Origin: Octopus sinensis
Lineage: Eukaryota
Direction: 5' to 3'
Length of the DNA stretch: 33,000 bases
NCBI RefSeq assembly: GCF_006345805.1
Contig: NW_021836291.1
Location: forward strand, 62,001 to 95,000
The notes beneath the pieces are model-generated. The model worked only from the letters and a program-made list of their open reading frames with translations, was not told the origin of the DNA and made no database searches. The number at the start of each line of letters is the position of its first letter. Within the stretch, counting starts at the first letter, position 1. Both the position numbers and the translations under genes were made by a program. Shown piece by piece: positions 9,822 through 10,922 of this stretch.

Positions 9822-10922
9822 TCAATTTCTGCTATTTTTCTTTTTAATGGATTTGACTAATTTTGTAGAATCGACTAGTTTAGTATCCAAATGAGGCAAA
9901 GGGACGACATCGTCCTTTGGCGGCTCGAACATCTGAGCTCTCCTCTTTTCTCTCTCCACTTTGTTAAAAGTCTGTCTCTCTCTAACAACTTCCTGCTTCC
10001 TCTTTCGTCTAGCGGATTCGCCCATAAAATACTCCCCGCTAATAAGCTGCTCGTCAATCTACAAATAGGGAATATAAAACAGACCTTCGATAGTGGCTGC
10101 GGGGGAGGAAAAGGAGTGTAGGGTTTCTTTTCCTTCCTCGCCTTCTTTTTCCTTTTCTTCCCACCAGAACATGTCTTGAAATTTGGAAGAAATCGTTCCC
10201 AAGACTCATTGGCCAATTTCTCGTCCTTTTCCAGTTCCTTCCTAATCATAAGACTCTGCCATCTTTTTTGGGCAAGAACTACCCTGATATTATAGATTGG
10301 ATGAATGTTGTTCATACAATCCACCACAATCTTCTCAGCCTCCACAACTCCTTTCTCTGAACCGACCAAAGCCACAGTATTGCCTTGAACAGCCACATAA
10401 CAGCCTGTCAGCAACTCAATCGCCAGAAAATATATTTTTGAACAAACCTTCAACGTCGATCCTTCAGAACCCATCAGTCGTTGTCTCCGCTTTTTAAACC
10501 GATCTTTATTACGAACTAGGGAACCTATTTTGACCACACAGCTCACGACGTCGTCAGACAGTGTCCGCAAGGCCTACAAATCAAGACAGGGAGGAACATG
10601 TTGGAGTGGCACACTCCTGGCAATGTTTTTGATCACATCCCTAGCCTTGATGATCATGTAGGGGTCCCACGTGTTGTCGGTCGTTTTGACTTTCATACTT
10701 CCTTCCACTAAATCCAATTCGCAGCCTATTCCCTTGTCATATAATTAGTGGGAATACATATTGGCCGAGTTTGGACTCGAGTGATGGCCAACATTCTCTT
10801 ATGTATTTTTCACGATATCGAGGAAATAAAATTGCAAACGAACTCTCACATAAAAATTTATTTGGATTGTCTTCTTTTTTAAAATTTACAAACGGTTCCA
10901 TGTCATGATCTTTGTTATCCAT
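9822..10922 (-). CDS. KRR1: KRR1 small-subunit processome component, 6 exons, 324 aa model
   Basis: [26 protein letters not shown]...[65 protein letters not shown]. Introns 10733-10757 (25), 10574-10597 (24), 10424-10447 (24, ends TG), 10256-10282 (27), 10059-10084 (26). Confidence 0.96.

Follow-up and report, generated by a model that had tools for sequence, protein, structure and literature searches.

In the window, the 33,000-nucleotide stretch of DNA analyzed here, the KRR1 gene is interrupted at a conserved position by a 24-nt segment that starts with GT and ends with TG. This segment is almost certainly a genuine ancestral intron by origin. Its unusual end points either to a rare splice site that breaks the near-universal AG rule or to a base that is variant or wrong in this assembly, and we tentatively lean towards the former: TG may be the site of ligation, probably aided by an AG located 9 nt downstream.

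The interrupted gene yields a 324-amino acid product once all five of its short segments are removed. Pfam identified both KRR1-type KH domains in this product (KH_KRR1_1st, 1.1e-27; KH_KRR1_2nd, 2.8e-39), and near-full-length alignments were obtained to human KRR1 (7mq8_NY, 8e-99) and yeast Krr1 (5wlc_NK, 2e-86). The tandem KH domains and the similarity to KRR1 structures indicate, from the predicted protein, that the gene at 9822-10922 encodes the KRR1/Mis3 component of the small-subunit processome. Its closest database relatives are animal KRR1 proteins at approximately 60% identity (maximum 61%), and the gene looks functional as it contains no frameshift or stop. Its parts are as follows.

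9822-10922, minus strand: KRR1 coding region, with ATG at 10922 and TGA at 9824-9822; six exons
10733-10757, minus strand: intron 1, 25 nt, GT..AG, phase 0
10574-10597, minus strand: intron 2, 24 nt, GT..AG, phase 0, containing an in-frame TAG
10448-10573, minus strand: exon 3, ALRTLSDD...MGSEGSTLK, whose last part encodes the GXXG loop (G-S-E-G) and the beginning of helix α2 of the second KH domain (KH2)
10424-10447, minus strand: segment 3, 24 nt, GT..TG (GTTTGTTCAAAAATATATTTTCTG), phase 0, stop-free, 79% A+T
10283-10423, minus strand: exon 4, ten protein letters withheld, then ...IHPIYNIR
10256-10282, minus strand: intron 4, 27 nt, GT..AG, phase 0, in frame and stop-free
10059-10084, minus strand: intron 5, 26 nt, GT..AG, phase 0
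10435-10439, minus strand: five consecutive A's occupying positions 9-13 of the intron, which places them 11-15 nt before the TG; the pyrimidine-rich TATTTTC comes next
10415-10416, minus strand: nearest AG beyond the segment, located within exon 4 at a distance of 9 nt (GCGATTGAG) and in frame; used as an acceptor it would give a 33-nt intron and the loss of A-I-E

The GXXG loop of KH2 (residues 135-138, encoded by exon 3) reads G-S-E-G in this protein and G-P-N-G in the majority of homologues; of the 228 homologues, 2 have Ser and 15 have Glu at the corresponding loop position.

The initial annotation had placed a 24-nt GT-TG segment inside the TLK-AIELLT motif, and both its sequence and its coordinates proved exact: the minus strand from 10447 to 10424 reads AAG, GTTTGTTCAAAAATATATTTTCTG, GCG. 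The segment is preceded by ACG TTG AAG and followed by GCG ATT GAG TTG CTG ACA. It lies in phase 0 with a length divisible by three and, as had also been noted, it is translated without a stop, as VCSKIYFL. The segment runs GTTTGT...TTTTCTG/G. In our own reading the donor, GTTTGT, is not U12-like, and a U12-type donor was set aside. The five-A run at 10435-10439 is a candidate branch-point region, and the TG itself has a C at -3, a G at +1 and a short pyrimidine run. The base singled out earlier, 10425, is indeed A on the plus strand and is read as T on the gene strand, where it occupies position -2 of the 3' splice site. Every verified intron has an A at this position, and one A>T substitution is all that distinguishes the segment from a perfect intron.

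To place the segment relative to known KRR1 introns, the exon structure of the gene was solved exactly in the brachiopod Lingula anatina and the octocoral Dendronephthya gigantea. Both have a phase-0 GT..AG intron at this site, between NGSTLK and AIELLTG in Lingula and between NGATLK and ALELLTE in Dendronephthya. Each of the five short segments of the window KRR1 matches the position of an intron in both species, always in phase 0. A check at the DNA level of a fungus-like metagenome contig revealed a 51-nt GT..CAG intron at the same site between TLK and A. Among 228 aligned homologues, 220 have no residue between the K and the A, in keeping with the earlier statement that the motif is uninterrupted, and when the segment is retained in the window protein the alignments to human and yeast KRR1 gap exactly eight residues, between TLK and A(L/I)ELLT. 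The other eight homologues carry an in-frame insert between K and A; seven of these inserts start with V (GTN) and all eight end with Q or K, compatible with CAG or AAG. The eight are uncurated, prokaryote-style ORF calls from genomic or metagenomic contigs, one of them being the call on the fungus-like contig whose insert was confirmed as an intron in the DNA, and by their sequence the inserts look like intron read-through; no curated KRR1 homologue in the alignment of 228 has such an insert. As the position is shared by Lingula, Dendronephthya, the fungus-like contig and the seven other insert-bearing ORF calls, it is ancient. The description of an intron-like segment interrupting the motif is thereby strongly supported and anchored to an ancient, conserved phase-0 position.

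Several introns common to Lingula and Dendronephthya have been lost from the window KRR1, for example the one between YKGLK(E/A) and (V/A)RK and those of the C-terminal tail; the five that were kept are all in phase 0. At the Lingula locus, exons 3-9 occur twice in tandem (locus positions 1359-4446 and 5093-8199) with identical tblastn scores, which probably reflects a duplication within the annotated gene that was introduced by the assembly.

The segment also matches the local class of introns. Introns were counted as verified only if aligned gap-free to solved structures, which gave ten in the KRR1, glucosamine-6-phosphate deaminase (GNPDA) and radial spoke head protein 9 (RSPH9) genes. These are 24-31 nt long and 54-81% A+T, and all are GT..AG. 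The segment, at 24 nt and 79% A+T, is like them in size and composition, as the initial annotation had proposed. When 837 codon-aligned 24-nt windows of exon sequence were scored, just 0.5% had a composition as intron-like as this one. Together with the GT start and the exact conserved phase-0 site, this makes the segment more than a chance resemblance. Its conserved position, a length within the range of approximately 20-31 nt, a GT donor and A/T richness are those of the ultra-short introns of dicyemids; the segment departs from that class at the 3' end, where it has CTG in place of an AG.

The count was restricted to the ten alignment-verified introns because an ORF-chaining gene finder over-predicts: in its AG-only form it placed, for example, a false 31-nt intron in the homeodomain of the POU gene. 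When one extra acceptor dinucleotide was allowed, every dinucleotide added spurious 'introns', and the score gain for TG (3063) was mid-range. Sas10/UTP3 was considered as an added source of verified introns and rejected, its homology being too weak for junction-level checks. Intron 3 of RSPH9 (15737-15763, minus strand; 27 nt, GT..AG) is, like KRR1 intron 4, in frame and stop-free. Three of the six in-frame short segments checked, the present one included, are stop-free and would be translated if retained; in this small sample of six there is no sign of the depletion of in-frame, stop-free introns seen in ciliates.

The features found in the remainder of the window bear on its likely source.

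8676-9509, plus strand: POU gene, a single 277-amino acid ORF with a divergent POU-specific domain and a homeodomain (..VVRVWFGNRRQK..)
12935-13785, minus strand: GNPDA, intact (1ne7_A, 2.6e-108)
15402-16326, minus strand: RSPH9, intact (8j07_M, 8e-67)
20003-23181, plus strand: gene for a long acidic, serine-rich protein of approximately 1030 amino acids with many LFDSSD(D/E) repeats and no Pfam match
28835-28917, plus strand: tRNA-Leu(CAG), found by Rfam (59.6 bits) and also by ARAGORN
30793-31250, plus strand: complexin/synaphin gene (Pfam PF05835, 3e-17)
2827-3486 (minus strand), 7395-8050 (plus strand), 23050-24583 (minus strand) and 6213-6664 (plus strand): reverse-transcriptase/LINE-like fragments with related peptide motifs
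5970-6087 and 30468-30635: tandem repeats rich in A/T, with one period of 43 nt and others of 21, 42 and 63 nt

The window probably derives from a dicyemid such as Dicyema japonicum. This assignment is based on the 24-31 nt introns, the fact that all best matches are animal proteins, the gene content and the GC content. The GC content of the window is 36.6%, and the D. japonicum genome has a GC content of 36.7%, a heterozygosity of 1.24% and 49% repeats (PMC6736024); the LINE-like fragments fit this repeat content. The only other animals known to have introns this short (<30 nt) are myxobolid myxozoans (PMC13644364). A myxozoan source was rejected on account of the ciliary protein RSPH9, the presence of which implies motile cilia, and of the GC content of 36.6%, compared with 29% in Henneguya. 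Myxozoans are not known to have cilia. Searches of a 5.8-billion-protein collection with the spliced KRR1 and with the genomic ORF spanning exon 3, the segment and exon 4 returned no match above approximately 63% identity, none of ten window ORFs looked up exactly in the protein collection was present, and a scan of metagenome contigs returned nothing above 70% identity. A complexin gene would be notable if the animal is a dicyemid, which has no nervous system. The LINE-like fragments have peptide motifs in common, namely ..ARWR(L/M)LGHILR.. and ..IAVETSGV../..IVVETTGG.., and the LFDSSD(D/E) repeats of the 20003-23181 protein presumably resemble the LFa motifs of FAM21/WASHC2.

To compare the possible fates of the segment, the spliced and retained forms of KRR1 were modeled with AlphaFold. 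In the spliced form the junction, K142/A143, falls inside a helix spanning residues 136-148, directly after the G-S-E-G (GXXG) loop of KH2, with a local pLDDT of 94-96. In the retained form the helix is still continuous through the eight-residue insert; local pLDDT is 58-59 and drops below 50 at residues 136-144, while the rest of the KH core remains above 86. Retention is thus modeled to put eight residues into helix α2 of KH2, just past the GXXG loop.

This result bears on the earlier suggestion that an AG>TG change has led to exonization, adding eight residues to the KH fold. KRR1 would then carry VCSKIYFL as a tolerated insert. Being a multiple of three and without a stop, the segment would escape nonsense-mediated decay and give a full-length protein, and the continuous helix in the retained model is compatible with such an insert. 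The window also holds two more in-frame, stop-free introns, which suggests no obvious purging of the kind reported in ciliates (PMC5014332). On the other hand, the insert lies in the middle of a helix beside the GXXG loop, where model confidence collapses. The 220 uninterrupted homologues have not a single residue there, the eight exceptions look like intron read-through, and the composition of the segment is still that of an intron and not that of an exon. Exonization is therefore disfavored, and we consider it very unlikely.

If the segment is removed, few products remain in frame. Only two GT..AG removals preserve the reading frame, one of 33 nt that loses A-I-E and one of 39 nt from a second GT that gives TLKVC-CYV; the other GT..AG removals of the segment shift the frame. 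The junction can also be rewritten as GG..CT or TT..GG, and neither has a canonical donor. On sequence grounds, ligation between CTG and GCG is the only route predicted to restore the conserved protein.

The 33-nt removal constitutes a fourth outcome, beyond the three put forward in the initial annotation: the TG would be real yet unused, the spliceosome would take the AG at 10416-10415, and KRR1 would be made without A-I-E. There is precedent for this, as human AG>TG mutants activate neighboring AGs (PMC2374985), and the product stays in frame. A 33-nt intron would not be exceptional in dicyemids, in which about one third of introns are at least 30 bp (PMC6543705), but it would be longer than every one of the ten verified local introns. 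Use of this AG would also remove a Glu that is invariant in 228 of 228 homologues and would make helix α2 three residues shorter. As the nine bases after the TG still encode the consensus A-I-E, including the invariant Glu, they have been under coding constraint and do not form part of a longer intron. Exclusive use of the downstream AG is, in our estimation, highly improbable.

A more serious alternative is that the working gene has CAG and that splicing is ordinary, the T at 10425 being a heterozygous or minor allele captured in a haploid assembly, or a consensus base error. The initial annotation had listed an assembly error among its options; this part survives within the broader alternative, but error alone is too narrow given the 1.24% heterozygosity of the probable source, D. 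japonicum, and was widened to include a heterozygous or minor allele. The D. japonicum assembly was generated from pooled parasites by merging Platanus (Illumina) and Falcon (PacBio RS II) assemblies, followed by collapse of haplotypes with HaploMerger (PMC6736024). Screens of human genes traced many seeming TG acceptors to SNPs that concealed an AG allele (PMC2374985). The single A>T step from a perfect intron and the untouched, intron-like composition of the segment likewise fit a recent change. If the T is an allele, it may be a recessive one with loss of function, carried along in an infrapopulation that expanded clonally. Against this alternative, splice-site positions are strongly constrained, so that a variant at this particular base is far less likely than a value of 1.24% suggests. 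Local assembly quality looks good, as there are no N's and zero frameshifts across 2.6 kb of verified coding sequence in three genes, and the region shows no signs of poor consensus. PacBio errors are mainly indels and not A/T transversions, which counts against a base error. We regard an underlying CAG as a real possibility, though on balance a doubtful one.

Splicing at TG is the explanation that we put forward, at a little short of an even chance. The analysis shows the identity, position and context of the intron and what the alternatives would cost; ligation at the TG is inferred from these, from the homology of the protein around the junction and from the human precedent. An ancestral phase-0 spliceosomal intron of KRR1 would have shrunk to the 24-31 nt size typical of this genome. 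U2-type splicing would proceed from the normal GT donor with a branch point in the A-run, and the exons would be joined at CTG/G, giving back the helix ...GSTLK-AIELLT..., which is universally conserved. Two things probably make the TG usable: a suitable context, with C at -3, G at +1 and a short pyrimidine run, and the AG 9 nt downstream, which would complete a TG-AG tandem like those known from human genes. The by-products to be expected are a minor isoform that uses the downstream AG and has no A-I-E, as well as some in-frame mRNA left unspliced. A tolerated TG acceptor had been proposed in the initial annotation on the grounds that introns here are length-defined; the acceptor itself is plausible, but the length-based reason is speculation, and the TG-AG tandem offers a documented alternative.

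Several observations weaken splicing at TG. All ten verified neighboring introns end in AG, and the likely source genome is 1.24% heterozygous with an assembly merged from Illumina and PacBio RS II data. In addition, no human intron has been found to rely on TG alone as its acceptor, and disease-causing AG>TG mutations in human genes activate nearby AGs in place of the TG (PMC2374985). A stronger version, which we consider unlikely, has a fixed TG as the constitutive acceptor of an essential gene; the dicyemid spliceosome, acting on 24-nt introns that carry few signals, would then place the 3' splice site chiefly according to how far it lies from the branch point or the donor, with AG not strictly needed. 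Were a constitutive GT-TG intron true, it would be the first such intron in an animal.

Dependence of a 24-nt intron on TG in an essential, single-purpose gene would, once confirmed, provide a clean natural test of 3' splice-site choice near the minimum intron size; human data suggest that TG is chosen only at a late step of splicing and only beside an AG. There is also a consequence for annotation, as AG-only gene finders applied to animals with tiny introns would give a KRR1 that either gains eight spurious residues or loses three conserved ones. If the T is an allele or an error, the intron is an ordinary one and there is nothing unusual in its splicing.

Among the closest known systems are the TG acceptors of human genes. 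TG is the recurrent non-AG acceptor of U2-type introns, with a pyrimidine preferred at -3 and a purine at +1 (PMC2374985). Szafranski et al. (2007) validated 39 TG acceptors in 36 human genes, every one of which has a partner AG at a distance of at most 28 nt (PMC2374985). The segment has the features of such tandems, including those of GNAS, RYK, DLG4 and SMARCA4: a U2-type GT donor, a pyrimidine-TG followed by a purine, and a canonical AG within 28 nt. The spacing in the window motif, CTG followed by GCGATTGAG, is 9 nt and in frame, as in RYK, DLG4 and SMARCA4, three human 9-nt tandems in which the TG share is 0.77, 0.62 and 0.41, respectively (PMC2374985). In the human genes the TG serves as an alternative site, the introns are long and transcripts prove its use; the window intron is 24 nt and was read from genomic DNA. 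Also unlike the human tandems, the TG of KRR1 would have to be the main site, since only TG gives the conserved protein.

Ultra-short introns have been described in D. japonicum and Dicyema sp. (Ogino 2010, Lu 2019, Zverkov 2019, Hadjez 2026), and the short introns of D. japonicum have two to three weakly conserved A's upstream of the acceptor (PMC13644364). The segment is like these introns in its 24-nt length, its donor, which is GT only, its A/T richness, its internal A-run and its conserved ancestral position. It is unlike them at the 3' end, where the published logo has AG and the segment TG. In ciliates (Paramecium and others), tiny introns that are in frame and stop-free are depleted, and their retention escapes nonsense-mediated decay (PMC5014332). 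As with these introns, a failure of splicing here would lead to translation and not to degradation; unlike in ciliates, three of the few (six) in-frame segments sampled in the window are stop-free, and the source is an animal. Set against these systems, the simplest view of the KRR1 segment is that it adds an ultra-short intron to the known cases of TG-AG tandem acceptors, unless the T is a variant base.
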